Positions 4,032 through 54,606 of a stretch of DNA of 64,000 nt are shown here, piece after piece; positions within the stretch are counted from its first letter, which is position 1; each line of letters opens with the position of its first letter. The translations under genes and the position numbers were made by a program. Origin of the DNA: Takakia lepidozioides (Eukaryota; Plantae; Bryophyta); assembly GCA_030704615.1 (NCBI GenBank), contig CM060733.1, positions 37,200,001 through 37,264,000 on the forward strand. Direction: 5' to 3'. Below the pieces are notes generated by a model, which was not told the origin of the DNA, did not search any database, and saw nothing but the letters and a program-made list of their open reading frames with translations.

Positions 4032-4429
4032 GGACGTGACTTCCGCGTAAGCGTGAGCGTGAGAGCGTACGCTCACGCGAAGATGATGTGGCGTGAGCGC
4101 AGGCTCATACCAGCTGATGTGGCGTGAGCGTGGGATCGCGTTGACGTGGCGTGAGCCTGCTGACGTGGCAGTCGTCTGAATGACGTGGCATTTGGACAAC
4201 TTGCCAGATGCCATGTCATCATAAACATATAGCACCTATAGCCGAGGGGCCTATAGCCGTGGCATTCATTCATGCAAAACACCAGAAATTAAAATGCAGG
4301 AACGACTTGTGAAAGCATTTGCATCCATTCCATTTATTTTCGAACGACTACACACAAGAAAGAAATGACACACATTGTACAACATAATTGGAGCTGCATT
4401 GGCATCAAATATATGAAGGGACATCAAGT

Positions 4430-7400
4430 TCAAGTTTCAACTCTTGTGAAATGCAGTAATGGAATATGTAGATGACCAAAGTGAAGAGGATGTAATGTGC
4501 TCCTATCCCGCTGTATAAGTGTATTCACCTCGTTGAAACTCATGGTGGCCTGGTGAATGAAGATGTCGCGTCTGGGATCACAAACCATATTGTTCAAGAA
4601 GATAAAATACAGATGCTTGCAGGGTATAAATTTGTCTGTCTTTCCCAAATTTGTTGTAAGCATGCCAACAAAATCAGGACAGGTGCAGTTAGGGAAATTT
4701 GAAACTGTGATGTCGTACAACTGGTCGTGCATAGCGGATGTGGAGGTCATCATAGTGTAGATTCGTCCATACCCGGGATGTGGAACTTCCGTAGTGCCTG
4801 TAACATGACCTTGAAGCATTCGAGCGGATTCTACCTTGCCGAAATGCTCGGCAGTCGGAGGGAAACAACGAACTAGCTTCCCATTTCGTTGTGTTGGCCA
4901 TGCATCAGCGTTCGGTGGTGGCACTCTAGAACTTGCTGAAGTAGAAGTACCTGCATGTACAGAGGAGGCTTGCTGAAGGGAGAAGCCTGCCTCCTCCAAC
5001 ATGGCAATCTCGTGAGTTGTGAGATGTGTCCCCACCTTCACAGGGCAAATGCTTGGTGGAGGAGGCTTCATGACAACCGATGGTCGCACAGTCCCACGCA
5101 CGCACCTACCACAGTCGTCAGGGCAGAACCAGAATTTGTGGTTCTTCGCCTCGGCTTGCCTGTAAGGCGTGAACAAACCAGTGAAGGGTGGAGCCGGAGT
5201 GCGGACCTTGCCTCTGGCTATGGAGGACTTGCATTTCTCACGATTGGTTGCTCTGATTGTCGTGCACTTCACTCGAGACCCAGCAGTGGTGCGTTCTATG
5301 TGCCAGACTTCGTCGGGGCACATGGGCTCTACCACAGGGGGGAGCACGTTCGCCTCCTGCCCCATTGCACTCACTGTGGGAGATGGCTGCCTTTGGCTTT
5401 GTGACAAAGGATCGTCCGCATTGGATATGCTGGAAACGAACCTCTGATGAAATGGAACACACGGCATGGAGAAATTGTCCATGTCCGGCCTGTGGGAGTC
5501 CGCATCCGACCCAGGAGGGGTGTTCAATTTCCGTTTACAAGACCCGAATCTCTTCTCACCCTCCAGATGGGGAACTCTGGACACCAGTGGAGTTCCTTCC
5601 GCACACATGCTGACAGCCCTGGCAATCTTGTTCGGATCCCCTGATCTTCTTGCTGCTCGCAACATCAACTCGGACTTGTCTGGACCCTTGCCACCAACGC
5701 CCCCCCCACAAGAACTCCCGATATCTCGTCTGTTGCAGTAGAGCTCGAATCAGATCATCTCCCGTCACCACGTACAAATCCCGGCCCCGCTTTTCAGATT
5801 GCTGCAACCATACATTGTGCATTGTCTCCGCCAGATTGCAAGAGGGCATGTCCGTCATCTCTTCAATTGAGAAGTGCTGCAAAATGGAAAAACATATATG
5901 AGAAAGAGGACAGGCACACCCCACCACAACAGACATGATTGGAAATGGATACAAACTCAATGAAATTTGCAAGTTTTCAAATGCACGCACCGTTGTCATG
6001 CATGCTCCCCGTTGTCTGTACCGGAAGTGCCAAAATGCCAGCCAGTCTTCTAGCACTCTCATACTGTCTTATGATGCAGCCCCAGATGAGAACCACCAGG
6101 CACGAATTGTCTGGAACAATGTATTCGCCTCTGCCATGCTTTTGGCATCTTTGTACTGTTTGCATAGCCTAAGATGAATAGGCTGCATTTCCGGTTTGAT
6201 GTCTACTTTTGTATGTTTCTCAAGGGACTGGGTCCAATGGAAAAGACATGTTCGCTCTCTTCCTGACATTGGCACCTTTGGATCTCCTGATCCAAACACA
6301 ATGCGAATAGCATTGAAATTCGCTTGAGCACTGTCGGCCATAAATCCGGCGAAATTTGGAAATGGGACACCCTGGGAGTCCATAACGCGAATGAGACTTC
6401 TCCACATTAGCTGCTGCAAATCCGCATCCTCTGATTGCATGTCACACACTGCAATTGTCATGACTCGTTGGTAGAAAAGATCGGAAACATGACACGCCAT
6501 TGTGGTCTAGTCTTTCACTCGTTCAAGACGTGAACAAACATAAGGAAACAGTTCTGAAGATCGTCACCCTTCTGCATGCGCTTCATAAGACTGATTCCGC
6601 TGCCCTCCCCGGCTGTGGACATTTTAAAAATGTACACTTTGTTCGACCCTTGACCTGGGAACACACTCTCTTGAATGTAGTCATACCTGCTCCGTCGCTT
6701 CAACTCGAAAATGTTATCAACGTACCCCTCTGTTAACAGAGCCCATCCTCAATGCATTCACTTGGTTTTTAATGTTCGGCGAGTTCAAGGTAGAGAAGTG
6801 ATCCATAACATTGTCCAAGGCTGCCCCGTCGAGTTTTCCTGCCCACAGAATCTCCTTCACTAAGAATATGGGTTTCCAGGAAAGTCTTGCTTGCTCCAAG
6901 AACAGTTGTGGAGGTGGTGGCTGTTGGATTGCTCTCATACTCTTGTCTTATCAACCTGGATACTGTTTCAACGCTTTCCCTGTAATCCCCCTTCGACACT
7001 GGATGGTTGTGGAACCCGAAATGCACACCGGCTCTAGTCAAGGCTGGAAAACGGTGCACCACATAGTACATTCTTGCTCCACACACTGCCACACAGGAAG
7101 GCGCTCGTTTGCAGAACTTGCAAACGAACGTGTTGGAGCTTGGAGGTGCTTCACCGGGCTTGAAAGGATTCTCGGCGACACCCTCCCACTCGCTCTGGTT
7201 CTAAACCTCTGACTGCAGGAAATGTCTGCAACTCAAATTCTTGCACCTCAAGTGCCCATTGCACACCGTTCCTGAACACGAGCTTGTCATCATTTTGAAT
7301 ATTGGATGTCTTCATTCTGCACCATGGGTGTCCATCGTGTCTCTTGTCCATTCCGTGCATCAGGCTCGAAACAGGTCTACCCCGCCCAGGTGGAGGCAAC

Positions 7401-8045
7401 TCAAAGACATCCCCCATCAAAAGATTCCGGAAGGTACTTCACACGCTCAATAGGGACAGTGTCCAAGTCAATCCCCCGCAATTCACTCTTGAAACCGGGC
7501 ATTCCTCCCATTGACTTCAGTTTAGGAATGACACTACACAGGTCCTTCAATTCTGGCACTACGACCACCGGAGAAGGAGCCACAAAAGGAATTTTCAGGA
7601 CGTCCTCCTCCGAGGAGTCGGAGAGCTCAACAATTTGTCTAGAAGTTGTGGGCTCCGTCTTCATGACCACATTCCGGATGTCTTGAACAACAGAAGCAGC
7701 AGTTCCCGGCGTCACATACGAACCAATCGACTGCCGGCGAGGAGCTCCAAGGACTCTGTATCTTCCTGGAGGAACTCTCCACTGACTCATAAGTGCGTTT
7801 TCATCTGGATTCTGGAAAGCATACTTCTTCAACTTCCCATCGACACCATAAACCTCTCTTTCCAGCCACACAGTACCAACCTGGAACTCGAAACGCGTTG
7901 CTAGGAGATGTTCCTCCGCAATTGCTAAACCATTGTCATCGGTCTCCTTCGAGAAAGGTACTGGTTTCTCCACAGAGTGAAACTCCGCTTCGGAGGAAGC
8001 CATGTTGCTGCAAGAGAAATTCCCTCGCAGAAGTGCGGAAGCCAC
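4430..8045 (-). pseudogene. MULE transposase with N-terminal GCM/WRKY-like Zn finger and C-terminal SWIM finger, frameshifted
   Basis: Consecutive minus-strand ORF pieces give CNGHLRCKNLSC...HFGFHNHPV, FMADSAQANFNAIRIVFG...RTCLFHWTQS (MULE D and CxxH motifs), CNLAETMHN (catalytic E region) and CTCPDF...CKHLYFI (SWIM). Confidence 0.88.
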
Positions 8046-8833
8046 AACTTCTGTGCGGATTCTTGTTACAAACGATAGTGGGGATTACATTTCTCATGCT
8101 TTGCATTTCAGACCGAAACCTAGAAGTCCGTCACCTTTACTAACCAGGTCGGCAAATGACAACACGTCATGTATGTCCCAAACCGTTCTCGAAGGGTCAG
8201 CCAAGACCTATTTTAAAAGCTGACATACCGTTAAAGAGCCTTTCAGAAACAGTTGTCAAAACAGTTCATAAAACAGTTGTTCAACAGTTATGTGTCTTTA
8301 CCGACCCATGTAAAATGACGACGGAGACCGACATCCTATGCCACCCCAATGAGTTCAGCCACGTGGAACACACAATGTATTGAGTGTAGGGTTTAAGAGG
8401 AATCGGCGGTGGAAGAATGGAAGATGTTGATCCGGGAGAATCCAAATAATCTACTGAAATAAGTCATCCATCCGAATCAAATCCATGCGATGGCCGTACC
8501 TCCATAATGAAAGACGGCGGCCACTGCAGAATGGACGAGTGTGCCGTTAGGAGGGGGACACGTCTGCAGTGAATACATGCATAACCGCCAAGAGTGATGC
8601 CCCAACTGCTACTCATCGCATGACGTCTCTCATTCCAGTAGATTGTAGTTTTTCAAGCTAGAGAGTAGCAGCAGACAAAGTTCCGCGCGAGGGAGTGGAA
8701 GGCGTAGAAGACAATCATTTTTTTTTACTTCAGCGCGAGAGAGGAAGAAGACTAGAGAGAGAATGAAAGGCCGAAAGCTGAACATGACACTGAAGGAGAT
8801 CGCAGAGGAGAGCGCAGCCCTGGAACCGAACAT

Positions 8834-11800
8834 ATGGCGGGGGAGGACCAGCCGCCAGCTCCTGATGAAGTTGGGGACGAAACAACATCAGAGGACAACA
8901 CAGATGCTATTAACACTTTCGAGGCAGACGCTCTTGCGAAAGAATCCACGCCGAAGGGGAAGAACGTCGTGGAGGAGGAGGCGACGCCGAAGGTTAAAAA
9001 GGCTGCCCAAACAGGGAGGACGACCGTCGTTGTTGCCACATCAAAGGCATCTGGGAGTTCTTCGGCCAAAGGACCTCAGGTGATTCTCTTACTTTCCATC
9101 TTCTGTCAAGTTTCCAGGGCATGAAAACTGCGTGCGTTGGCGCACGCAATTTTGTTGCCATCTTTTCTGCTATTTTTTGCTTTATCATTCAGAGTAAGAC
9201 CACAGGGATGCAGGCAATGCATAACAACCAAACCCGGGTGTGACCCACTTCTCACTTTTCATGTACTGCATAGAAGGAGAGACTTTAGTGGTTGTACCAT
9301 CCCAAGTAGTTCGATTACAGTTCGACAGCTGAGAGAAGGCCATACAGAGAACCTCCAGAAATTGCGTGCGTCAACGCACGCAATTTCTGAATGTTCTCTC
9401 TATGACCTTCTCTCAGGTGTGTTGTATTGACAGCGACAGAAGCCCTGAATAGGCATAAATGTGAGTGTAAGTCAACGCACGCAATTTCTGGGGGTTCTCT
9501 CACACTCACCTTTCTGCCTACAGCGAGATTAGATTAAATGTCTGCTACATACTTTTATGGAAGAGAGTAGATTGACATTGGGTGTGAAATAGGCAAAGAA
9601 ATGAGTACCTTTTAGAGGGTAGAAAATTGCGTGCATTGAAGCACGTACTTTCTAGAAAGTTTTTTACATGAGAAACCTATCATTTTGAGTGCAGACGAAG
9701 AAAATGAAAGGCGTTGCTCAGGTAGAGGACGAAGTGATTGAGCAGGAATTGGTGGTTGTTGAGGAGGAGGACGATGGCAGGCCATACGAAGACAGAGCGA
9801 AAGATCTGCTTTCCTTCTCCAAAGTGAATTCGGCCCAAGTCATCAAGGCCATGGGCGTCCCTGGGGGAAAAATAATGATACCCCTATGTCGTTTGATCTC
9901 CATGCCCTAATTCATTCGACCAGCTCTGACGAATGACATTCAAAAGTTGGAACATGATTTCTGCCATGGGTACATATAGGGTCAATCTGTTTTTTACGTC
10001 TCCTTGGCGAACTCCGCTGGCAGAGAGGTGTTGGTGGACGAGTCCATTGTTGGAGGCTGGGATCCTATCTGGCGACAGATAAACGATGAGTTTGAATCTA
10101 TCATTTGCAAGAGGCTCGTCACCCAGCCTTTCTCAGGCAAGATGTTTCATGTCTGGGATGGCAACCACCGATTGCTTGCCTGGAGGAACATGATCGAGAG
10201 ATATCATAGCACCGAGGAGGAGTGGCACTACTCTGTGGCCTCAATGGTGTTGGATCCCAAGGGAAACATCACTGCACTGTTGACGGCAAAGCATGACGTT
10301 AACAAGTAAGTGTCTTCTTTACCTGTTATTGTCTGCAATTTTCCCTTGACAGTCTATTCGCTTTTAGCACTCACTGACGACACACCACTATATGTGCAGG
10401 GGAACTGAAACCGCCCATGTGACAACGAACCTTCTTCACACACTATTCAGGATATAGAATATCGGCCATATGCCCCTCAATTCATTCAAGAGCATTCTGA
10501 GTGCAGAGTCATTCAAGAAATGTTTGACATCGAAAACGTCAAATACCTGGTACAAGCTGACGAGGGAAGCATTCATGGAGTACATGTACACTGTAAGTAT
10601 TCCATCGCTCTGGCCTTCCATTGTCTGTTGTGATGGTCAGTAACATTGTCTGTTGTGATCTTATTCCGGATTGCGTTTTGCAGCAAGAAATAGCTGAAGC
10701 TGGAGAGAGAGGAAAAGCAGAGTATTATTTGAAAAACCCGGAGGGTATGAGGACGTCCAAGGGAATGGCGGAAACCATGAAGTTTACGATGAATGAGATA
10801 CGGAAGAAGCTCATGAGCGCTTTCATGAAACAGCTGAGAATAGCTGACCCTGATTTTGGTCCCAAGTTCCTTAACCAGGTGAGGATCCACTGGAACAATA
10901 ATACCAAACTGGAGATGACACAGGAAAAGCTTCACCGGTTGTCAACTGCAGCTGTGGAAGCTGACCAGAAAGTGAAATGGTTGGAGATTTGGAATTCTGA
11001 CCCAACTATCAAGGATACATACTGCTTCCCTAGGGGTGAAAGAGATGAGAACACCGGGCACATCAAACCCTTCAGCGACCAAGTTCTTGATACATGGTTG
11101 CACAAAGCCACCTACTGGAGCCAGGTACTTTTCAGGATTTTCTTTGCTTGAACTTTTGAGAATATCTTCCTATGAATGGACTCTAACCCATGCATATGAA
11201 CACCTGTAGATTGAAGCTGTGCAAACAAGGTGCTGGAGAATCAGCTTTATGACTACAAAATTACCATGACCGTGCCCGAGGACACTCTGGAGGATTACTT
11301 GAGGCACTGGAAGGCCACTGCTTAGAGCAACTGCTTCTTCAGAGAGTTTTCCTGAGATGGAGGAATCTCCCGCACAAATGACTTTGACTAGCAGTACGGG
11401 GCGGAGGGAGCCATGAAGAGGGTCCTATACAAGTTCGTTAATTTTGTTTTATGTTTGAAAACTATCTTTGGCAATCAGTAGACAAACAGTTTGTGGCCAT
11501 GCAAAACTGCGTGCGCCAATGCACGCAATTTTGGAGGGCCACAAACTCAGATGTGTTCTCTCCTCCATCATGGATTTCAATGTTTCGTTGGCAGTTCTGA
11601 ATGGAATATGTGTCTGCCGAGAATGGGATATCTTACTGCATATGGAACCCTTTGTTTTCTCTTGTTCTTGCATATGGTACTTGTGAGTGTATTTCGGTTG
11701 CCTCATGCTCAAGTTTTTGTGCACCCCGAACTGTGTACGTCGACGCACGCATTTTGGGAGGGCCGCAATATATGCTTTTTTGCCTTCAATGTCTAAAAAT

Positions 11801-13433
11801 GTGCCTCTTTTGTTTTGTAGGTATATCAAGAACGTGCTCATTCCAGGAAAAAACCTCAGTAAGTACCCTGCCTTCATCGACTTGTGGTCTGACCCCTCTA
11901 ACAGTCAGACCATGTACACGGCAGCCATCCTCAGAGACTACGGGAGATATCACTTGAAAGACTGCTGCTAGTATCTAGACATTCCGAAATCAGATTGCCC
12001 CTGGTATGAGTTGCAGACACGAAACCAGAACGACAATGCGGAGTCTTTGGCTCCTCTTATTGACCCAATTGACAAGGAATTGCATGAGAGGAATCTGCGA
12101 AACCTCGTTGAGAAGGAACCCGCAGCCAACAAAACTCCTGCGAGAGGGAAGGGAAAGGGAAAGGGTACAAATGACTAAGGGAAGGAGAAGGCCACCCAAG
12201 GGGAAACTGCGGGGGATGACCTAGCGCAGACCCCAATTGCAAACAAGGAACAAAAACGTAAGGGGAAGTTTGAGCCATACGACGCAGTGGAGCACCCATC
12301 CAAAATCCAGCGAGAATGTAAATGCGAGATTGTCAATGATTCGTTCCTTACCATGATGGAAAGCAGAAAATCTGGTTACATTGGAGAACCCTCTCGAACT
12401 TGGGGCAAGCTGTGTGCATTCCTTGACTCGGTAAGCCAATTCCCACTGTTTGTCTCCTTTACTGTTTTCCCTTTGGGATAGTTATTTATTTTTGCCGTCT
12501 GTCTGTTTTTCAGGTAGGGCAGTGTTGGGTCAATGGTTCTCTGAAACCATATTGTGCCGACATGGTGATTGTGGACATTCCAGATGGGCTGCCAGTACCG
12601 GACATTCTACCCACAGGCACTTGCCCAACATGAAATGCATTTGATGAGAGGTACTGGCGGTGGGTCTTTTCATTTTGCAATTTTTTTTTATCGGATGCAG
12701 GGGTTCTTGTAATGATCCAGTCGGTCAATACGAAATGTCACTGGGAGCTTGCAAGCTACCTCAAGGCCTTGGGGATGAAAATCATCAAAACGTGGAATGG
12801 TGTGAACAGCCTGTACTTGACAAAGGGCGACTGTCCCGGACAAATGGTAATCGACTTTCTCTTACATGCTTCATTTGAAGTTCCATTTCACCCCTGCAGA
12901 AATGAGTGCGTCAACGCACTCATTTTCGGAGGTTTCAAGCATTGTTCTTTCTAGATGAATTTTTTTGGGTTCACTAATATTCCCACAACAGTGAAGGAGT
13001 TCAGGCTTCATGGGGGAGGTTCTTTCATCAACGATAAATTCGATCTAGTGGTGGACGACATGCACTACAATTACATGGATTCCAATGTGTGCTTGCGAAA
13101 GTCCAACTCCACACCATGGAGAGGGGCCAAGGAGAAGAGCCCAACATTTATTCAAACAATTGTGGAGACTTGTTCCCATCGGGGGGCGTATCGTGGACCT
13201 CACTCTTGGCACAGGTTTCACCCCGAACCTGTTGCGGTGTTTTCTTCTTGGTGCAAAATTTGTTTATATATGTCCTAAGAGTACTCTGTCTTGCAGGAGC
13301 TTCGTACCATGCTTGCAAGGCAGCGGGTAGGCATTTGTTTGGTATGGAAGGGGATGCGGACATTTTCAATGACCTCCTCCATAACTTGGAAGCGCCAGCG
13401 CCGGCGCCTGCTGCCCACAACAGGAGGGTATAG
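8834..13433 (+). pseudogene. Multi-exon ParB-like plus beta-class amino (N4C/N6A) DNA methyltransferase-like gene (MULE cargo)
   Basis: GT-AG introns at 9080-9694, 12431-12513, 12847-12954 and 13215-13296. ParB-type WDGNHRLLAW (DGNHR 10157-10171). MTase motifs in beta order: EIVNDSF, ADMVIVDIPDG (12556-12588, DPPY position), LSDAGVLV, then KSPTFIQTIVETCS..GGRIVDLTLGTG|ASYHACKAAGRHLFGMEGD. Several stops and frameshifts. Confidence 0.8.
9127..12924. repeat. Seven dispersed intronic palindromes, consensus AATTGCGTGCG-N4-CGCACGCAATT
   Basis: Copies near 9127, 9360, 9471 (half), 9625, 11505, 11730 and 12901. The 9360 copy is the centre of a hairpin of about 95 bp (9326-9421). Confidence 0.85.
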
Positions 13434-14046
13434 TGCATGTGGAAATGAATGAAGGGGACGACAAAGTCTTGGACGACGATTTCACATGTGAGTAAGTTGG
13501 TTTTCTGTAAGCATCCGATTTCTCCCGCGAAAATGCCCCCCCCCCCCCTGCTTTCCCATTAATGGTGGCTAATGCAATTGTGGTTCTTTGGGTGGCAGGA
13601 TATTGGAAGCTATTCCTTTGGTCGACGTCTCTTTTATTCACAGCGACTTGTGGTGCAGCCCTCCACGTTCATACATCCTACCCGACTACGCGGAGGCCAT
13701 TGCTCGTCAATAGAGTTTCATGTTACCTCCCCCATGTGCTCGAAAGCACAACACGCACCTCGGAGCTCGGGTTTACATCGATGATACTGCACAAGTTTCA
13801 GGGGATAGTTCTAGTGACTGAAATGCAAATTTCATCATTTTGGGGGTTCTTGTGATGTTCACAGTTTCAGACATTTTGTGCCTCCACAACTTTGTAATAA
13901 AATTTGTGCCTGTTCGTTGTAATGTCGTTAAAAGACGGTTTCTCATTTTCTTGCCGTGTATGCATGTACAACAATGGCTTCTATGCACTTCATACAGTGG
14001 ATAGTTGTATCCTGCTTATAGGCTTTGATTGTAATGTACATCAAAT

Positions 14047-14468
14047 GGTTGGTTATGGGTCAAACAAGAAGACAAGGCACCTAGGGGATGATGTATGTAT
14101 TGACTCTCAGGTCCAACGCAAGTTCAAAGGCAGCCTCATGATGCCTAACATTGGTTATGGGTCAAACAAGAAGACAAGGCACCTAGGGGATGATTTGTGG
14201 ACTCTCGGGTTCAACGCAAGTTCAAGGGCAACATCCTGATGCGTAACATTGGTTATGGTTCAAACAAGAAGACAGTGCACCTAGTGGATGATGTATGGAC
14301 TCTCGGTTTCAGTGCAAGTTCAAAGGCGGGATCTTCATGCCTAACATTGGTTATGGGTCAAACAAGAAGACAAAAGGGGATGATTGGTGGACTATCGGTT
14401 TCAGCGCAAGTTCAAGGACAACATCCTCATGTATAACATTGGTTATGGGTCAAACAAGAAGACAAGGC
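14047..14468. repeat. Tandem repeat, about 98-bp unit, 4 copies plus a partial, inside the MULE
   Basis: TTGGTTATGGGTCAAACAAGAAGACAA recurs near 14049, 14151, 14249, 14347 and 14439, and the intervening sequence is also homologous. Confidence 0.92.
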
Positions 14469-31302: not shown

Positions 31303-31360
31303 GGTCGGGCTAGGGATTGAACCTAGGACCTCCCCCATTCCGGTGGGGTGCTCTACCATG
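31303..31360 (-). repeat. 5'-truncated tRNA-like (SINE head) sequence
   Basis: Minus strand reads TGGTAGAGCA-CCCCA..TGGGG-GAGGTC-CTAGGTTCAATCCCTAG-CCCGACC. Confidence 0.55.
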
Positions 31361-43042: not shown

Positions 43043-44560
43043 TGCTTCATTCAGTAAAAGTCGTCACCTACAAGAGCACTAACGAACAGTAGCTAATACC
43101 AAACTGGGTCGAAGAAATCATTCATTAGTAGGACAATAAACTCAATGTTTTCAATTTTAAGGATTATGCAATTATTGAACCTTGCACAATCGCGCTAATT
43201 TGACTCCGTAGTTTACTTCATTGGATGAGAAATTGAAGATGTGATGCGAAAGAATGCCCTAAAGAAGCATGCGCGATCGCGCGTGCTTCATTTGGTTGGT
43301 ACTTGTATTCTATCGACCAACAACAACACCATTGATACCCAGATGATTAGATAACACATATGAGGATATGTCTGAGTGCATACTCAAAACTGTAAAGTGT
43401 TTCGGAAGACATTAGTTCACAGTATACAATGTCAACTAAAATCTTCCGTCGCACTTTATCTGTCTTGCCATTTACACAGAATATGATAATTCTTGTATGT
43501 GGTGACATGGTCACTCTTATGTATGATGGGTGGAGGTGTTCAGTGTGGACACAATAGTACACAATAGTATCCAAATATCAATCCAAAAGTCCAGGGCAGT
43601 TTGAAATATTACTTGTCGTCAACATCGCTTAGGTTGTTCATCGATTATGTCGACCACTGTTTCTGATTAGACAGTGAAGATGTGATGTCCAAGAATGGTT
43701 AAAAGAAGTGCGCGCGATCGCGCGTGCTTCATTCAGTGCAAGTCGTCACCTATAGAAGCCCTATCGAACAGTAGCTAATACCAAACTGTACGTGGTCAAA
43801 GAAATCATTCATTAGTAGGACAATAAACTTAATGTTTTCAATTAAAAGGATTATGCAATGATTGATCCTTGCGCAATCGCGCGAATTTGACTCCGTAGTA
43901 AACTGCATTGGATGAGAATTTGAAGATGTGATGCGAAAGAATGCCCTGAAGAAGTACGCGCGATCGCGCGTGCTTCATTTGGTTGGTACTTGTATTCTAT
44001 CGACCACAACAACACCATTGATACCCAGATGATTAGATGACACATATGAGGATATATCTGAGTGCATACTCAAAACTGTAAAGTGTTTCGGAAGACATTA
44101 GTTCACATTATACAATGTCAACTAAAATCTTCCGTCGCACTTTATCTGTCTTGCCATGCACACAGAGTATGATAATTCCTAGGCATTGTCACTCTTATTT
44201 ATGATGGGCGGAGGTTCAGTGTCACAATAGTATACTATAGTATTTAAATATCAATCCAAAAGTCCAGGGCAGTTTGACATATTACTTGTCGTCAACATCG
44301 TTTAGGTTGTTCATCGATTATGTCGAGCACTCTTTCAAAATAGACAGTGAAGATGTGATGTCCAAGAATGGTTTAAAAATGCGCGTGCGATCGTGCGTGC
44401 TTCATTCAGTGCAAGTCGTCACCTACAGGAGAACTAATGAACAGTAGCTAATACCAAACTGTACGGGGTCGAAGAAATCATTCATTAGTACGACAATAAA
44501 CTCATAGTTGGTTTATCAATTTCATTTGCACATGCAATGAACCTTGCGCAATAGTGCGAA
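43043..44560. repeat. Tandem duplication, about 680-bp unit, about 2.2 copies
   Basis: TGCTTCATTCAGT..AAGTCGTCACCTA at 43043, 43725 and 44398, with homologous sequence between. Confidence 0.92.
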
Positions 44561-44979
44561 TTTGACTTCTTCGTTTCAGTCTTATTCTAATATAAATAAA
44601 AATGACTCCCAGCTGGATAATCCTCAATGTTCTCAATGTACTTTAATAGTCCTTCCGATAGACTTCTCGCAGTGGGATGAAATTAGTTCATCTGTGCCTC
44701 AACTCAATAACGCGCGATCGCGCGTGGTTCTGATGTTGCTACAGTTCAGAAGAATTTTCTTGGGATAATAGATGTCAGGATACTCTTATATGACTGAAAG
44801 AACAAAGTCATGTATATGGATTCTGTTCGCCATGCTTAGCAACATCGTTGTTGCTTACAATCGGATTTAACGTTATTGGAGGGAAAATTGTGGACCAAAT
44901 ACGCGCGATCGCGCGTTCTTCGCGTGTCTCCTTCTGTACAGTTTGTAACTGAGCACGAGTTCTTGATGATTCTTTCAGT

Positions 44980-45687
44980 GTGGTGGATTCGTGTTCGATG
45001 AGGGAGGAGAAGGAGATGGAACATACCGGACACAAGGCAACGCTTTCACCCTCCTCACAAGGTGAATGCGGAGCTGCGGTTATTATGACGGAACCTTCCG
45101 AAGGAGTTCATGTTATGTCATCTCCAGTTTCTACAATTCCATCCACAGAGGAGCCTGACACCTACTCCCCTGAATCAGACGATCAAGACAATTATTCACC
45201 AATAGGATATTTTTGCGACGTTCCTCCCGGGTCAGCAGCTTTAAGTTCTTTTCTAGAACAATATTGTGGAGGGTCTTCCGGAGATCTTGTAGCTGAAGTA
45301 TCGGCGGAATCAAATGATTTCTGCGCTATGTACCCTGCGTATACGCCAGATACCCAAGATTATACACCCGGATCCCCGGAGTATACTCCCATATCACCAG
45401 AGTACACACTCCTCAACCCTGAGTACACTCACCCAAAGTATACACCCTCATCGCCAGGGTATACTCCGGGATCCCCAGAATACTCACCAATATGATACTT
45501 TAGACACCTCAGACCCGGGTCGGCTGCATTGGCCTCATTTTTGGCACAATACACACCTATGTCAACTGTAAGTTCCGACCATTCAGAATCATCAGAAATA
45601 GAAAGATTCTTCACGAGCTCACCGAGTGTACTTGAACCAGTTCAGAATCTCCATGTGGTTCCATCGAATACCCACAATAATCAGTAG
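44980..45687 (+). pseudogene. Acidic S/P-rich protein with RNA polymerase II CTD-like heptad array
   Basis: YTPDTQD YTPGSPE YTPISPE YTLLNPE YTHPK YTPSSPG YTPGSPE YSPI (45340-45492). The TGA at 45493 aligns with GGA in the upstream duplicate module YSPIGYF...PGSAALxSFLxQY, and the frame then stays open to 45687. Confidence 0.7.
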
Positions 45688-46156
45688 GATCACTTTCTGG
45701 GTACTCGATAAGTTTCCAAGAGATTCACTAGGGGTGTCCTGAATCACCATGATATAGTCCTTCATCTCAGTTTTAGGCAAGCATATATGACTGTACATTT
45801 AAACGCCAACGATGTCTCCGTTTTCGTTCTTCACTGTTGAATAATAAAGTATTCTTCATGATTTTTGAAACCAATTAAATGATCTGCAGCTTTTGAGATT
45901 TCCAGTTTAATTGTGACTTTGATTTATTCCATTCCATTTATTCCATATTGCAGTCACAATTGAATGTCCCCTATTCCAGCTTAATTGTAAGTTAGTTTCT
46001 TTCAATTCCATTTCTTCCCAGTGGGATTCCCATTTGTATATTGGCCTGACATCCGTAACATTATGATTTGTTTCAAACTTCGGCCTTTCCTCTCAATCCT
46101 GAAATAATGCCATGAGATATCTAATCCAGATAACATAATGTTGTGTTTCATTTCAG

Positions 46157-49100
46157 TGGTCAGTCATATACCGGGGGGATTGTCTGGTTGGCATATGCAA
46201 GGAGATATGTGGGGAGTTCATCTCAACAAAATCGCCAAACTTCAGTATAGACCACGTAGCTTTGTATACTCTTAACCAGGCGATCTCCGAGTGGGGAATA
46301 AATCTTGTGGGTGTACCTCCTGACCACCAACTGAAGTTTTCCTTCAAGATTGGAGCGGAGGTGAAGGAGCTTGATTATGGCTACGTTAAAGATGTTGAGA
46401 TGGAGTCTGACGTGGAGAATCCAATGATGGTGGTTTTCATATTGGAGGATGGTAGAGCGAAAAAGACGTTTGGCTTTTGTCTGGAATCTCGTCGCGTTCG
46501 CAAGACAATGATGAAACCAGCTGTAAAGATGGGATTCACTTTCCCTGAAGGTGGTGCAGCCCTAACTGCTCAGGGTTTCGTACGAGCTTGGAGCATTTTC
46601 CAAGATGTACTCCATGCGCAGGGAAATATAAAACAACAAGACGATGAGGCAGCGAAGGGGGCAAAGGGTAAAGGGAAACGGAAGTCCACGGCGGGATCGT
46701 CTCAGACTGAGAATGAGGAGGAGCAACCAGCCGGAAAAAAGAAAAAGAAAGAAGAGCTCGATATTGTATTTATGAATGACAACAAGAAGCCAAAAGTTGG
46801 CGAGATTTTCGACAAGGTGAAGTGCGAGGCGATGAATCAAAGTCAGCAGAATGACTACAAAGACATGTTCCCTTTTGGGTTCAACCACATAATATCAATT
46901 GACATCTCAAGGATGGAACTTGCTCCAAGAAGCATGGTGTATCGTCCGCTGAATATTAATCACAAAAATGAAGTCAAAGCCCGTCTGTACCAGTTGCGGG
47001 TTCTAGATACGAAACATCATGTCAATCTGGCGCCAAAAAACGAACAGGTGCCAACCCAGGTATCTGCGATGAAACCAAGGCATCAGAAGGATATTAACAA
47101 TTCAAAATTCTTCGTCATTGGAGGCCAGCACACAATTATGGCTGCAAAGGTATAGTACATCAACGTTTACCTCACGCGATCGCGCGTGCTTCTATATTCT
47201 TCTCTGCTTCTATGAGAATCATTTTTCAGATATTTCTTTGCATTTCTTCATTATCATACTCGCGCGATCGCGCGTGCTTCTACTAGATGATTATATCAGA
47301 TGCATCGACGACTTATTTCTAAGAGATGCATAGCATGATAAGCAAGCATGCGCGATCGCGCGTGCTCCTTTCTAGTTCAATTCCATGCCGATGTAACATT
47401 TTCCAAATCAGAAACTCGCGGAGGAGATTACTGACCGGGAGCAGAGGGACTACTACGCCGAATGGCCATCAATTATCCTCTGGTCACATAACAATAATCG
47501 ATTGTTGAAGATTTCTAAGCTCTTGAACGACCCAAATAAAGCCCAAAAATTCGACACAACATTCCCGGAGAAAGTTGCTCACGCCAGGATGTACTATGAG
47601 TTGAGGGGGAAGCCCAGGAAATTCAACGACAACGTTTCCAAATCTGAAACCGTTCAGTGGAAGGTAATTATTCAGACTTCCTTTATTGTTTAATGTTTTG
47701 TTGTGCATTCAGTAGAACTGTGTGTCCCTGTTGTGTGTTTGCCTGACATGTTGTTCCTCTTGACCAGGATTTTTTGCAAGCCTCATAACTTATATTGGAG
47801 ATGCTTAGCGTTAAGGAGGCCATGACCTTGGTCCTTTGCGATGACGATGTGTGGGAGAAGTGGCAGGCGGTTTTCAGAGAGTGGGAGAAGGGAAACCTCC
47901 TGGACATTAACGGAAAGAAGCATAAGGGTGTACAATCGCAGCTTACCAAATCTACAGTCTGCAAACTCCAAGGATTGAACCCCCTTCAAATGAAGAAGGT
48001 TGCGCAGAAGATTTTGGACTTGAAGATCTGCGTTCGTGGTCCTTACAAAGGAAAAGACCCCAAGATTCTCTGCCTGTCCAATTACATCGATCGAATAAAG
48101 GACAAGCGGTTTATCATCGATGATGTCACGGTGGTATTGGGATTTGATGCCAGGAACAAGCAGCATCCAGAGTCGTACACAAAAGCACAATGGCTCGAAG
48201 TAAAGAAAAGGTACAAGTTCAACAAGTCGGAGTTCGAGACATTCCGATTGAAACTGGGGACCAAATACATGAAAAACAAGGTGAACATGAATATGAAGAC
48301 CGAGAAAGTGAGTGACGCTTTCATCAAATACGTGCTTTCATGTAAGAAAAGGGTTGAAGACATGGAGAAGGAAATGGGCAACCTCAAGGATACCTTCAAT
48401 TCACATTACCAGTGCATAGGAGGGAAGCGGAGGTTCACGGATGCCAAAACACATTTGAAAATTGTGAGAAAGAGGTATTTCGATAACATCGCAATGGTGT
48501 TCGTCAACACAGTTTGTGACGATGATTCAACTGTTTTCATGCAAAGAAATTACAAGAATTTTTTTGATGCGTTCTTCGAGCAGCAGCTAAGCCCCAATGC
48601 ATTTGTTTTCTTCTCGACGCAGAGGTCCTCTTCCAATTTGGTTTCGTACATAAGGTTTGGTGAGGGGCGGGACAAGTATATTTTGTTTCAGGGGACCCCG
48701 ACTCTAAAGCCTACAGGTCTAACACCCTGCTTATCGACGTCGTTGGGAACATGTACAAGTTTTTCCTCAATCCTCTGAGCCTGGTCATCTTCCTACCTAC
48801 ATACGAAACACTTGTAGATCCATACAAGGATGATTTTCTGATGAGTCATCTGAAGCCCCACCTGGAGAAGTTGAGGCATTCAAAAATGGACACTTGGGCC
48901 TTCAATGAACAGAACCCTTTTGGAATACCTAAGGATATCTACTTTCAGGATGCTAGAGTGAAATTCATTAATCACTGGGACTTTCCATGGCCTAAGAATA
49001 AGGAGGAATGGGACGCACATCTAAAGTACCTAGAGGCCCTGGAAGTGGAACATGGGATATTAAAGTGACTAGTTTTGAGAATGTATTGGGATTATGAGGT

Positions 49101-49756
49101 CATTGAGTTCCTTATCTGTTCATGGGATTCTTCTTTTCTTGATTTACTTAATTGTCTTTATCACTCCTTCACAGATCCGACAGCCTGGATCTTCACCTGT
49201 GAGGGGAGCTCGCTTGATAATTTTTGACGTTAATGGAGTGCTATGCAAAATAACGAAGCGTTAGAGCCCAGGACCTGCTCCGCGTTTTTCGGAATCTGAT
49301 TACAACATTCCTGCTATTGTTGGGTATCGACAAATCTTTAGACGGAAGATGTACCGGGAAGTTTGGTAAGAGTTACACAAGCACTTCATTTTAGGTGTCT
49401 AGAGCTGCATGGTGCTTAAAAACTTAAATGCCGTGAACTTTGGATTTGCTCCTACGTGGTCTTCCACGGCCAGCGTTCATCATGTCGCAGGAGGATTGTA
49501 TCATTTGCCTAAGCAATCTGCACCCAAATTACCGAACGGGACAAGATCACCTCCTGTATTCTTGAAACCACTCCTTAAAGTATGGCAGAGTTCTGAAGGT
49601 TTTTACAATCAGAGTAACACTCTGCTGATTGATGATACGGCTTTGAAGTATTTGATGAACCCTCCTGAATCTTGTCTTCTTCTCAAGTCTTTTGAGAACA
49701 TCGACGTCGACATTTCTTCCTTCTCAAACTTAGAGATTTATTGCTTAGCTTCTTGA
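46157..49756 (+). pseudogene. Multi-exon gene with ParB/Srx-like domain, apparently ending in an FCP1/NIF-type HAD domain
   Basis: VYRPLNINHKNEVKARL...FFVIGGQHTIMAAK (GGQH 47120-47131). Introns at 47150-47411 and 47664-47767. After an acceptor near 49173: RLIIFDVNGVLC (49211-49246), HFILGV*SC, NTLLIDDTALKYLMNP. Stops and frameshifts are present. Confidence 0.68.
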
Positions 49757-49926
49757 AATTTGAGAACGTCTCAAGCTTCTTGAAAGCAAGGAGAATAGGA
49801 TTTCCACCATTCAAAGTTAACGATCCACAGTTCAAGCCTCTTCTTGACTATATTGACAATTCACAATATCGTGATTTTCAAGTAAATGATAAGTAAATAT
49901 CCGCGTCCTACTGTGGACACAATTTA

Positions 49927-50230
49927 CTATTTAAAATTGATTGTGATTCTGCTGAAAACTTGGTGAGCATTCATGATGCTCCCGTACTTAACATACAGGT
50001 TGACAAGGGTGTTGAGGAGAAAAACAGTTGGCATGAGTCCACTTTGGATCATAATGTGAGTGTGCACCTGCTTTCCAGCTTCCAAACCTTTCCTCTTGAT
50101 GCACTTAAGCAAGAGACAGACATACTTATCTAAATCTGCTGAAATTCCTCATTGGTTTAGTCTGTAGAGCCTCATTCAATCTACCTACCTCACAAAGCAT
50201 CTTGACATGCCCAGAAGTGCCAGAACAGGC
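49927..50230 (-). pseudogene. PLS-class PPR gene 5' fragment
   Basis: MLCEVGRLNEAL...LLKCIKRKGLEAGKQVHTHIMIQSGLMPTVFLLNTLVNLYVKYGSIMNAHQVFSRI. Confidence 0.85.
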
Positions 50231-52251
50231 ACTGTGGACTCCCTCTCTTGATCCTCTTCCAGAAGTTGTGGTCATGGTTGAGGTGCCTGATTTGATCATT
50301 TGTGCCATTGCTGCCGCGGCTTCCAATTGACCATCTACCCATGCAGGTTTCTTGTAGCTATCCTTCCACAGGGATTCATAGGTGATCTGGAGCTTGAAAT
50401 CCGGCCCACTTCGATGAATCTCAACCCACACTCTATCCCTGCTCCTTCATTCCAGAGCTTCTCTTAGTTTCTGTTATCTGTTTTTAATACTTTCCTGTTG
50501 CCACATAGGCAGTAACATGTCAAATCACTTCAAAACCCCCGGTACCATATCCACCAAGAGCTAACTTGCAGAATTCAACATGAAAATTAGGGACAACTCT
50601 GATAACAAGGAAAACAGGCTGAAATGTATTGAAGAAGGTGCCTCCGTTACCGCTGCCTAGTTCTATCAACCGAGTCTGATGGGAGGGAAAAACAGGCTGA
50701 AATAGGTCAAAGAAGAAGGTGCCCTCACCACATTGTCCTCGACCTTGTGTCATGACCCATGGAGGATTTGACTAACCATGAACCTAAGAGAACCTCTTGT
50801 GTGTGCTGCTTGTGTCTGTAGTCATGTAATGTCTGATTGGTCTATGAGAACCACCACAGTGCAGCTGAACGGGCAGAAATTGAAGCACGGCCTGCTAAGA
50901 CAAAGCTGACTCTTCCAAAAACCTTGTAAACATCAGGAAGGATACCAAAGCACGGTACTAACAGGACATTTGCAGGATGGACAAACTTCTTCACATTGTA
51001 CATTAAGAAAAAGCCACACCTTGCGATTGCGGTTGTCCCACCATCGTGAAGGATCTTTAAAAACTCATGCCAGCTCTGCTCCGTGCTACAAATTTAAGGC
51101 TGAGTTTGATGAGAGCGCAAAACAGGCTGAAATAGGTCGAAGAAGAAGGTGCCCTCACCACATTGTCCTCGACCTAAGACCAAGCTGACTCTCCCTAGAA
51201 CGGCGAGCTCTCAGCCGACACCTAGTCCTCGCACACATACCCTAGCGTTTGTCGGGTTGCTTGCTTTTCAGATGCAAAGGTTGCTCCAACTGCGGGCCTC
51301 CCATGTTTGCCCTCCCTCCCGCTCGCTGCTCTAAGTCCCAGCCCTCTCTCTCTCCCTCCTGCTCGCTCGCTCTAAGTCCCAACCCTCTGTTCACAGCTAC
51401 CGGGATGGGCAATTTTTTTTTTAAATTAACCTTTTGCAAACCCTACAAGCAACTTTTGCAAAAAAAATTAAACCTTTTGCACTTTGATCTTTAAACCTTT
51501 TGCACTCTGCAACAAGTTTTAAAGGTACCATGTACTAGCTCTACCCTGTTTTCATTTTACAATGTTGAATGATTCATATTTATGTCCCTGCACTGATATG
51601 GTCATACTTAATTTGACTCCCTTCAATCATAATATGAGGACTGTTAAGCTTGCATTGCATTCGGTTTACATTGCAAAGTGCGACGACCACCTCTTCGTCT
51701 TTCCGAGGGCAGATTTATGAAGTTCATGATTTATTCCATTTGCAGCGGAGTACTAACTAAACCCATACACCACAATCAGCGGAAATAATTGTATGGTCTC
51801 ATTTCACACAGGTGTGTAACATGCCATGTAAACTAAGCCAACCCCTGCCACGGTCATGGCTGTTTTCACACCGTTCTTTGCCTAGGGTGTGGACCACATG
51901 TGAGACACCCCACAGTTAGGGCATATTTAGACCCACACCTTGGCTTAGTCTACAGACCCGTGATAAAAGCCGTGGAATGTGTTAGGTGTGAGATGGCAGA
52001 GCTGTGGAAAAAGCCGGTTTCTCTTCTAGTGTTTACACAAAGTAACCTCGCACGATCGCGTGTGGTTGCAGAAAACTCAGAGACTCCCGATTGTGATTTT
52101 TTGTCTCAAGTCTCAATTGGGTGTCGTAATGCTGAAAATATTACATTCGCAAAATATTCCATTTGAAAATTAGGGTATAGAAACTAGGCACAAAACGCAA
52201 GTTTGTCGTGGCATTTTTTGAGTTGCAAAATGTATTAGAAATACCTAATTT

Positions 52252-53043
52252 TTGGGTCAGATAACAGAAACTAATGGGCTCTTTTGGATGGTTCAGAACA
52301 TTGTTACTCAAGGAATGTGTGGTGTCCGGAAACACAAACACATGTTGCTGGTACTGAGTGTCAATGGACTTCTTTGCTACAGGCCACCTCCTACCAGAGG
52401 TGAGTTGTTTAAACAGAGGTTCCACTTGAGGAAAGTAACAATTCGGGTGCCCGCAAGACCATTTGTGGTTCCAAGACCTGGAGTGCTGGAGTTTCTTCGA
52501 CTTGCATTGACTCATTTTCATGTAGCGATTTGGTCTTGCTCTGAGAGGGATACTGTATTCAAGATGTTGGAGTGTTTCGTTCCTCTGGAAATTATGAAAC
52601 AATTTCGTTTAATATGGTCTGCCGAGCATTGCACAGATACAGCTAGACATATGAAGCCTGGAATGAAATATCTTATTAAAGATATTAAGAGTATTCTCGT
52701 AAAATTTAGTGGGAAAGAATTTGCTAGGCAGAGACAAATTCTACTGGTCGACAATGACCCATCCAAGGCACTCCGAAACCCAGTGAATACTGGAGTCTTC
52801 CCCATCACATTCAAGGTATCAAGCAATTTGGAGGATTTGGTTGATCTCACCAAAACTTTGTGGCATTTTCTCTCTGGCTTGATTGGAGCCCAGTCCGTTG
52901 TTGATTACATCGGCAAGAACTCCTGCAAATCTTCCGGCCCTCCGATAGATCGAAATCACGTCTACTGGTCCTGGTTTGGAAGATTTATTGATGCTTCTGT
53001 TTGGCACCCCCCTCAAAAAGATCCCGATTATCTGGGTACGTAG
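52252..53043 (+). CDS. FCP1/NIF-like HAD domain protein, probably catalytically inactive (likely one exon)
   Basis: LLVLSVNGLL (motif I without Asp), PRPGVLEFL...FHVAIWSCS, LIWSAEHCTD, YLIKDIK, ILLVDNDPSKALRNP. Uninterrupted 263-codon frame. Confidence 0.8.
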   Translation: MGQITETNGLFWMVQNIVTQGMCGVRKHKHMLLVLSVNGLLCYRPPPTRGELFKQRFHLRKVTIRVPARPFVVPRPGVLEFLRLALTHFHVAIWSCSERDTVFKMLECFVPLEIMKQFRLIWSAEHCTDTARHMKPGMKYLIKDIKSILVKFSGKEFARQRQILLVDNDPSKALRNPVNTGVFPITFKVSSNLEDLVDLTKTLWHFLSGLIGAQSVVDYIGKNSCKSSGPPIDRNHVYWSWFGRFIDASVWHPPQKDPDYLGT

Positions 53044-54606
53044 TTTATCATTGCCCTATTTTGTGTGTAGTCCATCAGCTTTACTTCAACCTCCATTTGT
53101 ACTTATTTGTTTGTTGACTTCACATGACTTTTGTGAGATCAATGATATTTCAATGATCTTTGTATTTTCTTTAACAATTCCCTTCTGTGCTGCCTCTACA
53201 TAGTTATATTCCAGTGTCAAGTTCAGAATCAAATTCGATAGGAGAAGAAAGAGGAACGGCAGCGTAAGGCTGAGCGGAGGGACCGCGAGGCTTTACGTTT
53301 GTCAAGATCATCAAGTACAGCTACCAGTGAGGTGTCTGGTCATATCTTACATCAATCTCCCACTGTATCCATCTCCTCGGGTGCACAGAATTCCGCCATC
53401 AGTTGTAACCGACGGCGATCTCAAACATATGCGTTGAGTGTGAGCCGTTTGGGAAGCAACTCTGTGTTATTGATGAATTAAACTATGGCCGGCCTACTCA
53501 TTACACACATACGTTATTTAACTCTGTCAATGTTATGCCAGACCCTTTCGAAGTTTGAGAGAAATCACATGCGATCGCGCGTGGTTCTTTCATATATGCT
53601 CTTGTGGAACTAGCATGGATCAGCAATGCCATTAGATGTTATCAAAACAAGTTGATTTCATTGTTAGTTTAAGCAATAACAGATCAGGCTGGAGGCTGGA
53701 GGAGGTTGGAGGAGAAGAAATTTTTCGATGTTTCCATATTACGATGGGGAACAAGTGACACGATCATCGTCTATGTCTACATTCGGGTTCCTGACTCGTA
53801 ATTCAAGCTCCCACGATGGTTGTCTCATTTGTTCCTGAGCAGATTGTGAAGCTCTGTTAAAATCTCTCTTCAAATGGATTGAAGTAAATTTCTTCCCTGA
53901 CGAACTGATGGCACCACTGTGGTTGATTGAAATCTGGATGCACTTGGCTCTTTGGGGTTCTCAATGGTGGTACGAAAATGCTGTCATTTGAAGATGTGAT
54001 GATTCTGCAGGTATAGTGAGTTACTTCAGGTCAGTTACAGCGAGGGAACTCAAGGTATTCGGATAATCCGTCCCGGAATATTTCACACCATCATCCTGGA
54101 TGATTCATTGATGTGTTTCAGAACGCGCACTCTAACGGAGTTCAGCCCTCATTCTAGAAGTTGATACTCTCATTGACATGGTTTACGTTACTTGTATTGG
54201 TCCATGCCGCATGCGGCGAGACTTACTCAAATTGACATGGTTCTGAAATAAAACCTAGTTGTTTATCATCAATGTCTCCCCATTGTCTTTCATTTCATTT
54301 CATGGTATTCTGTCATTGTGCCATGTTTTGCTCACATATTTGATGATTTGTCTTGTATGTTACATAGTAACGGCCTTCACAAGCTCAGTCGCGATTACGA
54401 ATATGACTGGTGCTCCAATCATCCATCAAGCCGCGGATCATGAAGCGAGTTATCACCCGACGTTTTTTTAATTTATTTTTTAATGTAATGGAAACACCTG
54501 GGAGCCACAGCTCACAAATCAGGCCCCCTTAATAGTATAACCTCTTTCATAGTAACCCCGCCATGTGGCATTGGAATGGGACACCACCCAGGAACATACC
54601 ACACTC

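Follow-up and report, generated by a model that had tools for sequence, protein, structure and literature searches.

An insertion with divergent genes in a window of nested transposons

We analysed a 64-kb window (64,000 nt; positions below count from its first base) of the Takakia lepidozioides genome (GenBank contig CM060733.1, positions 37,200,001 to 37,264,000 of the forward strand), eukaryotic sequence in which DNA transposons are nested, with a G+C content of 0.44 and a CpG observed/expected ratio of 0.63 (Table 1). Two of its transposons concern us here: element 1, with a minus-strand transposase and a divergent plus-strand accessory gene, and a transposon whose DDE-type gene matches Pfam DUF7869, present in four copies (A–D) as judged by self-comparison of the window. 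One of these, copy B, adjoins a plus-strand gene, and we refer to the two together as element 2. An earlier note on this DNA had proposed that both elements, despite unrelated transposases, share one architecture: a divergent, spliced gene for a ParB-like fusion protein and a palindrome of the element's own that this protein recognises. Overall, we confirm the observation in part and find partial support for the interpretation: element 1 holds up well, while the ParB assignment in element 2 is unproven. We are highly confident that element 1 is a mobile Mutator-like element whose accessory gene encodes a predicted ParB/Srx-fold domain and a methyltransferase (MTase)-like region.

Element 1 sits within the transposase region of DUF7869-transposon copy A. 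Its empty site is seen in the uninterrupted copy B, and alignment of copy A to copy B thus identifies all of 4032-15569 as an insertion, flanked by a perfect target-site duplication (TSD), AGTGTAATG. The earlier note had started the element at 4032, which is indeed the first base after the left duplication. The element ends in imperfect inverted repeats of about 30 bp (GGGACGTGACTTCCGCG... and, as the reverse complement, GGGGGATGCTTCCGCATG...), both of which read GGG..G..CTTCCGC... In the left subterminal region, at 4051-4130, there is a repeated motif, GTGGCGTGAGCG / GCGTGAGCG, which is unlike the internal palindrome described below and provides candidate transposase-binding sites. The 3' non-coding part contains a 98-bp tandem repeat (14049-14469; 4.3 copies, 83% match).

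All protein searches were run per exon or per stop-free segment: exons were not joined, and broken genes were left broken. The transposase remnants of element 1 contain a weak SWIM-type zinc finger at about 4595-4714 (Pfam SWIM, E 9e-4; 19.2 bits as compared to a cut-off of 19.6) and a DDE-like core at 6072-6506. By tblastx they are colinear with an intact relative at a locus elsewhere, L080, as well as with L001 and L079. The Pfam MULE profile matched neither the element 1 transposase nor the intact L080 relative, and a PDB sequence search with the latter returned nothing useful. The resemblance to the MULE DDE region is at the level of motifs. From the 9-bp duplication, which falls in the 9-11 bp range of Mutator elements, the terminal repeats, the sub-cut-off SWIM finger and the colinearity with L080 we infer that element 1 is Mutator-like; because no curated MULE profile matches, L080 included, we put the superfamily call no higher. 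We detected no significant similarity between this transposase and the DUF7869 transposase, which in copy B occupies 37556-40365, likewise on the minus strand; the description of the two as unrelated by sequence, and as sharing a strand, therefore stands.

Table 1. Location of the features discussed in the text (window coordinates).
Feature	Position	Strand	Description and basis
DUF7869-transposon copy A	1201-4022 and 15579-16600	+	split by insertion of element 1; self-comparison
TSD AGTGTAATG, left copy	4023-4031		9 bp; alignment with uninterrupted copy B
Element 1	4032-15569		11,538-bp DNA transposon, inferred to be Mutator-like; alignment with copy B
Element 1 transposase remnants	4433-8084	-	several stop-free pieces
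Palindrome 1, three copies	9129-9647		intergenic (divergent genes); 57-575 bp before candidate start 9704
ParB/Srx-fold domain (predicted)	9689-10306	+	IPLCRL..., FIRP, FHVWDGNHRLLAW, KHDVNK; relatives, family HMM, AF2 model of a relative
Middle region of accessory gene	10371-12478	+	conserved blocks; tblastx against L001, L002, L079-L084; hhalign E 0.002
Palindrome 1, two copies	11508-11751		in probable intron flanked by coding blocks 11415 and 11867
Beta-class N6/N4 MTase-like region	12556-13430	+	Pfam/PADLOC matches of relatives, profile and motif comparison
Palindrome 1, sixth copy	12903-12922		in gap between coding blocks 12849 and 13105
TSD AGTGTAATG, right copy	15570-15578		9 bp; perfect repeat of left copy
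DUF7869-transposon copy D	31359-32217	-	fragment; self-comparison
DUF7869-transposon copy B	42206 down to 37556	-	second transposase of the earlier note; decayed DDE-type gene
Palindrome 2 array	42765-44914		11 sites, partly in ~683-bp tandem repeats; upstream of plus-strand gene
Element 2 gene, first coding segment	44980-45492	+	ends in RNA polymerase II CTD-like heptads
Candidate ParB-like stretch	46883-47149	+	IISIDISRM, YRP, FFVIGGQHTIMAAK; hhalign against family profile A3, E 0.039, probability 1.3%
GT-AG intron	47150-47411	+	262 nt; three palindrome 2 sites
Further coding segments	47412-47690, 47789-48775, 48664-49065	+	no recognisable family
NIF/FCP1-like domain 1	49208-49753	+	at least 2 segments; motif I FDVNGV; Pfam NIF E 0.049 (49409-49756)
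NIF/FCP1-like domain 2	52252-53040	+	motif I LSVNGL; PF03031 E 1.1e-11, 45 bits, cut-off 21.8
DUF7869-transposon copy C	54951-55593	+	fragment; Pfam DUF7869 E 1.7e-18

The element 1 accessory gene family has a predicted ParB/Srx fold

The accessory gene (9704-13430) lies inside the target-site duplications of element 1. Searching a library of 1.84 billion proteins with 9980-10306 yielded 315 relatives at E<=1e-3, including 78 at E<=1e-10, and in these we found no Pfam domains over the matched region. The relatives of the transposon genes reach a liverwort (Riccia) and ferns (Adiantum); others are in metagenomic or ENA contigs. The hidden Markov model (HMM) of the family matches the element 1 domain with an E-value of 9.7e-51, and the family consensus reads IPLCR...VRP...GY...FYVS...W..W...FE...F.VWDGNHRL.AW...WH..V..I.L...MHDIN. 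The GxxR-type motif takes the form DGNHR, with the N invariant and the G and H at least 90% conserved in an alignment of 49 sequences; the window copy has kept it, within FHVWDGNHRLLAW.

For structure prediction with AlphaFold (AF2) we used a relative that is 47-49% identical, P0003, rather than the broken window copy. The model, built from the 49-sequence alignment, has a mean predicted local distance difference test score (pLDDT) of 88.4. When it was compared to the PDB with Foldseek, ranks 1-48 of the listed matches were all ParB/Srx-fold proteins: Noc, ParB (with CDP or CTP-gamma-S), PadC, KorB, sulfiredoxin, SerK and SbnI, with probabilities up to 1.00 and E-values of 0.018-1.3 over these ranks (0.018-0.3 for the better matches). 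On the basis of this model we accept that the accessory gene family of element 1 has a ParB/Srx fold at its N-terminus.

Several results weigh against the assignment, or against its extension to DNA recognition. The Foldseek E-values are modest even for the better matches (0.02-0.3), and the model is that of a relative. Neither single sequences nor the family profile produced a ParB match at the sequence level in Pfam, NCBIfam, PADLOC or the PDB; when the exons or the family profile A3 were searched against the PDB, only chance matches came back (kelch, eL24). Lastly, we identified no sequence-specific DNA-binding module in the accessory protein.

The C-terminal region resembles beta-class amino-methyltransferases

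The C-terminal region of the accessory gene contains a motif IV-like ADMVIVDIPDG (12556-12588), which lacks DPPY, and PWRGAKEK... is also present in the window copy. A motif I-like GRIVDLTLGTGFT follows at 13184-13222, reached only via a change of frame, and the region terminates in GRHLFGMEGD. The same arrangement is seen at full length in the Riccia sorocarpa protein P0159 (1207 aa), in which the ParB-fold domain is fused to an MTase-like C-terminus. The part of the accessory protein that separates the two domains is helical. Several relatives, including the C-terminus of P0159, match Pfam N6_N4_Mtase (PF01555) with E-values of 9e-6 to 5e-5, just below the cut-off; the matching open reading frame (ORF) of L002 hits the PADLOC type II MTase models (MTase_II) with an E-value of 9e-5; and a small family profile, A5, aligns with DpnA (E 0.005), M.RsrI (0.012) and CcrM (0.03). 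Weakly but consistently, these comparisons support a C-terminus that is beta-class amino-MTase-like, with the motif I for S-adenosylmethionine binding placed after the catalytic motif.

The catalytic motif itself departs from this class: in the family, motif IV is D[VIML]P[DE][GD]LP and not (D/S/N)PP(Y/F/W). It thus has no counterpart of the aromatic residue of DPPY, which makes it doubtful that the MTase-like domain would methylate bases. Of the two effectors named in the earlier note, an MTase in element 1 and apparently an FCP1-like domain in element 2, the first is recognisable as an MTase-like region and the second as a NIF/FCP1 domain (E 1.1e-11), and both deviate in the catalytic motif, the NIF domain having no DxDxT.

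The window copy of the gene has decayed. The ParB-fold domain is interrupted by two in-frame stops (TAA at 9908-9910 and TAG at 9977-9979), another TAA lies at 12176-12178, and there is an apparent frameshift near 13170; given the stops and the frame change, we regard the window copy as a pseudogene. We considered whether 9908-9979 could be a small intron and rejected it: the 72 nt are in-frame coding sequence, with the expected FIRPALTNDIQKLEHDFCHGY between the TAA and the TAG, and relatives align straight across in tblastn. The gaps 11415-11867 and 12849-13105 are not conserved in any relative and are probable introns.

Each element has a palindrome of its own

Palindrome 1, TGCGTGCG-N4-CGCACGCA, occurs six times in the window at up to 3 mismatches, as compared to 0.03 expected, and all six sites (9129, 9363, 9628, 11508, 11732 and 12903) are within element 1. 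Palindrome 2, GCGCGATCGCGC, occurs 24 times at up to 2 mismatches as compared to 0.25 expected, with every site falling either at 42765-53580 or in copy A, B or D of the DUF7869 transposon. In copy A the sites are at 2516, 2706 and 2835, plus 15683 after the element 1 insertion; in copy B at 39106, 40527 and 40669; copy D has a conserved site at 31661, and 2835, 40527 and 31661 are homologous positions of the three copies. Outside the main array, three sites 88 bp apart (47174, 47262 and 47350) lie in the GT-AG intron of the element 2 gene, and two flank the ORF of NIF domain 2: 52050, about 190 bp upstream, and 53569, about 530 bp downstream. Both palindrome families of the earlier note are thus confirmed, at counts well beyond chance.

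Might the palindromes be functionless, that is, foldback or MITE (miniature inverted-repeat transposable element)-like remnants, or products of local tandem duplication, that are where they are by chance? Some copies of palindrome 1 do form part of longer hairpins (47-nt arms at 9325-9420; 27-nt arms at 11488-11547), tandem repeats of 683 bp and 88 bp take in part of the element 2 sites, and sites in old copies show CpG-type decay. Against this, none of the 30 sites of both palindromes in the 64 kb falls outside the two element types. Palindrome 2 has an extended form, (G)AACCTC / GAAGCAC - core - GTGCTTC, and the similarity among its dispersed sites spans 16-36 bp, ending about 10-12 bp from the core; as similarity stops this near the core, these sites are short motifs rather than parts of a longer repeat. 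Furthermore, the same arrangement has arisen with different sequences at the related loci L080 and L083 described below. We consider it very improbable that the palindromes are functionless remnants of this kind. A search of metagenome contigs for GCGCGATCGCGCGTGCTTC retrieved 67, each with a single match, a G+C content of at least 55% and no similarity to element 2, and we set these aside as chance bacterial matches.

Beyond the window, we surveyed palindromes at eight loci whose genes include relatives of the element 1 accessory gene. L080 (ENA ERZ25039595, contig_96421) has eight copies of CCCTCTCGGCGCCGAGAGGG, as compared to 0.00 expected, at 7347-9198, upstream of a ParB-like ORF at 9385; its intact transposase ORFs (439, 427 and 202 aa) are divergent from that ORF, a layout that recurs in L001 and L079. 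L083 (ENA ERZ25039595, contig_565) has 15 copies of AATGGTCGG-NN-CCGACCATT, again as compared to 0.00 expected: five are upstream of the accessory gene, which has long ORFs, and ten are in an intron (7396-8726), many of them 85 bp apart, a spacing comparable to the 88 bp of the window intron 47150-47411. A different palindrome in each family, beside or inside one and the same gene, fits the pattern expected of co-evolution between a protein and its sites. A survey of just this kind had been suggested in the earlier note, and its outcome is mixed: L080 and L083 have distinct arrays, and five of the eight loci (L001, L002, L079, L082 and L084) have no repeated palindromes, which counts against recognition by the accessory protein. 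These five are lower in CpG content or older-looking, several with broken ORFs.

A stronger competitor reads the palindromes as ordinary cis-regulatory elements: they would serve the divergent promoters, with a host factor or the zinc finger of the transposase as the binding partner, and would have no link to the ParB-like protein. A number of sites lie near ORF starts: 9628 is 57 bp before 9704, the last array site, 44903, is 66 bp before 44980, 52050 precedes the NIF domain 2 ORF, and 40527 and 40669 are upstream of the transposase start in copy B; moreover, the entire L080 array is intergenic. Ordinary promoter elements would account equally well for sites placed shortly before an ORF start, and this tells against recognition by the accessory protein. 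What promoter elements do not readily account for is that arrays are also found within introns at a regular spacing of 85-88 bp, that the palindrome differs with each related accessory gene family, and that L083 combines an array and an accessory gene with no detectable element 1-type transposase nearby. We therefore regard a purely cis-regulatory role as rather unlikely, though appreciably less so than functionless remnants.

From their position, enrichment and family specificity, we judge it slightly better than an even bet that the palindromes are binding sites of the accessory protein, and treat them as candidates. Taken together, the layout of element 1 is probably best explained by family-specific palindromes that are recognised by the element's own accessory protein. 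Under this proposal the accessory protein would load on its own element at the palindromes and, once loaded, would either modify the DNA or chromatin of the element or regulate its divergent promoters. Whether loading would be followed by nucleoside triphosphate (NTP)-dependent clamping or spreading of the kind known from ParB and KorB is another matter: the fold and the kept DGNHR are what point to it, and we think it unlikely.

The apparently intact relatives, namely the transposase and ParB-domain ORFs of L080 and the long ORFs of the L083 accessory gene, make a direct test of self-recognition possible since they come with distinct palindromes: three families permit a specificity swap, and hence a direct test of ParB/parS-type self-recognition in eukaryotic transposons.

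The gene next to DUF7869-transposon copy B

About seven heptads in tandem (45340-45492: YTPDTQD, YTPGSPE, YTPISPE, YTLLNPE, YTPSSPG, YTPGSPE) close the first coding segment of the element 2 gene; they resemble the repeat YSPTSPS of the C-terminal domain (CTD) of RNA polymerase II (Pol II), and the same locus encodes two FCP1/SCP-like domains. The NIF/FCP1 domains are real, domain 2 being clear and domain 1 a weaker match, but, as far as their motifs indicate, catalytically degenerate. With the profile start inferred from the Pfam coordinates, neither keeps the catalytic motif DxDx(T/V): domain 1 reads DVNGV and domain 2 SVNGL, so that the nucleophile aspartate is missing in domain 2 and the second aspartate in both. 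A PDB search with NIF domain 2 gave nothing useful. At L082 (ENA ERZ25073694; 1-641, plus strand) a Pfam NIF ORF lies 8 kb from a ParB-like/MTase-like gene; as it has no similarity to the NIF ORFs of the window, we rejected it as kin of element 2, and the proximity is probably coincidental.

Is the gene ParB-derived? Five short motifs (IISIDISRM, YRP, FFVIGGQHTIMAA, EWPSIILW and LLNDPNK) are colinear with the element 1 family over two exons, and it is exactly these five that hhalign aligns, with E-values of 0.039 and 0.48 and probabilities of about 1% or less. At the GxxR position the gene reads GGQHT, with the arginine replaced. The element 1 family HMM and phmmer found nothing significant in the element 2 exons, which likewise had no ParB match in Pfam, NCBIfam, PADLOC or the PDB; the middle exon bore no resemblance to the element 1 family, which the element 1 control did match. 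Word-index protein searches with two exons found no relatives among proteins of 0.55-1.75 times the query length. Single-sequence AlphaFold prediction of 46820-47152 reached a pLDDT of 34.5 and is unusable. A ParB fold by structure prediction, whose absence the earlier note would have counted as refuting its proposal, was thus obtained for the element 1 relative and not for this stretch, and likewise the divergent ParB-like fusion, supported in element 1 by the fold of a relative, is not demonstrated in element 2. Weighing the colinear motifs against the absence of detectable relatives and of significant similarity to the element 1 family, we put a ParB origin of the gene at a little under an even chance.

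A second question is to what the gene belongs. Aligned with each other, copies A and B are homologous as far as 1201 / 42206, where the sequence is of low complexity; this leaves the gene and the main palindrome 2 array outside the demonstrably shared transposon body. We found no inverted repeat or target-site duplication enclosing the transposase together with the gene, and a search for terminal inverted repeats (TIRs) of the DUF7869 transposon itself found none. In the nearest DUF7869 transposons elsewhere (L006-L011) the transposase alone is in common with the window copies, and palindrome 2 is absent; both points weigh against the gene and its palindromes as a transposon-borne system. The architecture claimed in the earlier note applies to element 1, which is bounded by its TSD, while the element 2 gene lies beyond the A/B homology with no enclosing ends. 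That the gene is cargo of the DUF7869 transposon, for which adjacency and shared palindromes speak, is a tentative reading to which we give somewhat less than even weight.

We give the same weight to the gene being a host or orphan gene specific to its lineage, whose FCP1/NIF domains are degenerate and which is caught between two DUF7869-transposon fragments, neither ParB-like nor cargo. The end of the A/B homology at 42206, the lack of a TSD or TIR around the gene, the failure to find relatives for two exons, the absence of anything similar from related DUF7869 transposons and the uniformly negative or insignificant ParB tests all agree with a host gene. A host gene would not be expected to have the extended palindrome (G)AACCTC-GCGCGATCGCGC-GTGCTTC in common with the transposon copies, both around and inside it, nor the five motifs colinear with the ParB-fold family over two exons, nor an 88-bp intron array that mirrors that of L083.

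On the most far-reaching reading, element 2 would be a second, independent accessory system, in which a highly diverged ParB/Srx-derived module (GGQHT where GxxR would stand), joined to CTD-like heptads and two catalytically dead FCP1/SCP-like domains, would bind the GCGCGATCGCGC sites dispersed over the promoters and introns of its own gene and the transposase gene, and would tune transcription of the element by trapping or mimicking the Pol II CTD. We think this unlikely. Were it true, ParB-type self-recognition would be joined to an effector of the transcription machinery and not to a DNA-modifying enzyme, and if the ParB-like part is real, an FCP1-like locus with CTD-like heptads would represent a new effector type. 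Our literature search on FCP1-type transposon cargo found nothing relevant.

Other sequences in the window

A direct duplication of about 6 kb lies behind copies A and C of the DUF7869 transposon (16600-22462 and 57430-64000, 94-97% identity). As the same sequence follows both, the two copies are segmental duplicates and not independent insertions; relative to copy C, 2.1 kb (55313-57430) is deleted in copy A. The interval 55593-57430 (minus strand), present in copy C alone, has three minus-strand ORFs of no recognised family (55765-56223, 56232-56570 and 56642-57091) and is possibly another inserted element. Copies A (1327-1917) and B (41492-42069) differ in the orientation of a 590-bp segment, both flanks of which point the same way; this looks like a local inversion inside the 5' region of the transposon. 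Lastly, minus-strand ORFs at 33429-34696 resemble, by eye from their translations, integrase/RNase H fragments of Ty3/gypsy-type retrotransposons.

Comparison with known systems

To our knowledge, ParB-like accessory proteins of transposons were described only in 2025, and we know of nobody who has tested their function. The closest case is Sola1-1_Ec32, a 21.5-kb Ectocarpus transposon that encodes, opposite its transposase, a 1104-aa protein in which a ParB-like domain is joined to an N4C/N6A-type MTase; the protein is proposed to act on the element that encodes it, by binding and modification (Dinatale et al. 2025, PMC12477816). In element 1 and in relatives of it, the 1207-aa P0159 among them, ParB-like and MTase-like domains are likewise fused, a likeness of architecture. 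Element 1 differs from Sola1-1_Ec32 in its carrier, which is Mutator-like and not Sola1, in a motif IV that lacks DPPY and in the decay of the window copy to a pseudogene.

In red algal Plavaka elements, PAG3 combines an N-terminal ParB-like domain with a 2-oxoglutarate (2OG) oxygenase, with tandem inverted-repeat arrays alongside (Petroll et al. 2025, bioRxiv 10.1101/2025.02.11.637652 / Curr Biol), and the authors report these accessory genes from Plavaka, Mutator, Zisupton and Fanzor elements alike (same study). The arrangement of a ParB-like N-terminus followed by a modifying-enzyme domain, with inverted repeats beside the gene, recurs in element 1, L080 and L083. Unlike the 2OG oxygenase of PAG3, the effector is MTase-like in element 1 and NIF/FCP1-like in element 2, where the ParB part is unverified.

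ParB-linked N6A/N4C MTases have been traced to phage and plasmid loci, with some transferred to eukaryotes; the eukaryotic cases are haptophyte fusions to FHA domains and chlorophyte and chytrid fusions of ParB-helix-turn-helix (HTH) modules to Dam-type MTases (Iyer et al. 2015, PMC4738411). Unlike these, the ParB part of element 1 would be an N-terminal Srx-like domain, and its MTase is PF01555-like.

As compared to the bacterial clamps ParB/parS, Noc/NBS and KorB/OB, the element 1 family has the ParB/Srx fold as its top structural match and keeps DGNHR; the candidate sites are palindromes of 12-26 bp in arrays, some of them located in promoter regions like KorB sites. Unlike bacterial ParB, Noc and KorB, the family has no membership at the sequence level, its modelled domain contains a helical insert of about 50 residues, no HTH or dimerisation domain was identified in it, and it resides in a eukaryotic host with no ParA partner.

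A functional parallel among plant transposons is VANC of the Arabidopsis VANDAL Mutator-like elements, an accessory protein with an anti-silencing role, which recognises short motifs of its own family, alters the epigenetic state of its element and co-evolves with the motifs from family to family. The fold of VANC is unrelated to that of the element 1 protein, and VANC causes loss of methylation without having an enzyme domain.

The central idea, ParB-like self-recognition cargo across transposon superfamilies, is thus already in print for brown and red algal transposons. What is new here is a different, Mutator-like carrier and an accessory gene family that reaches land plants, together with family-specific palindromes: three related families of ParB/MTase-like genes, each with a different array beside or inside the gene.

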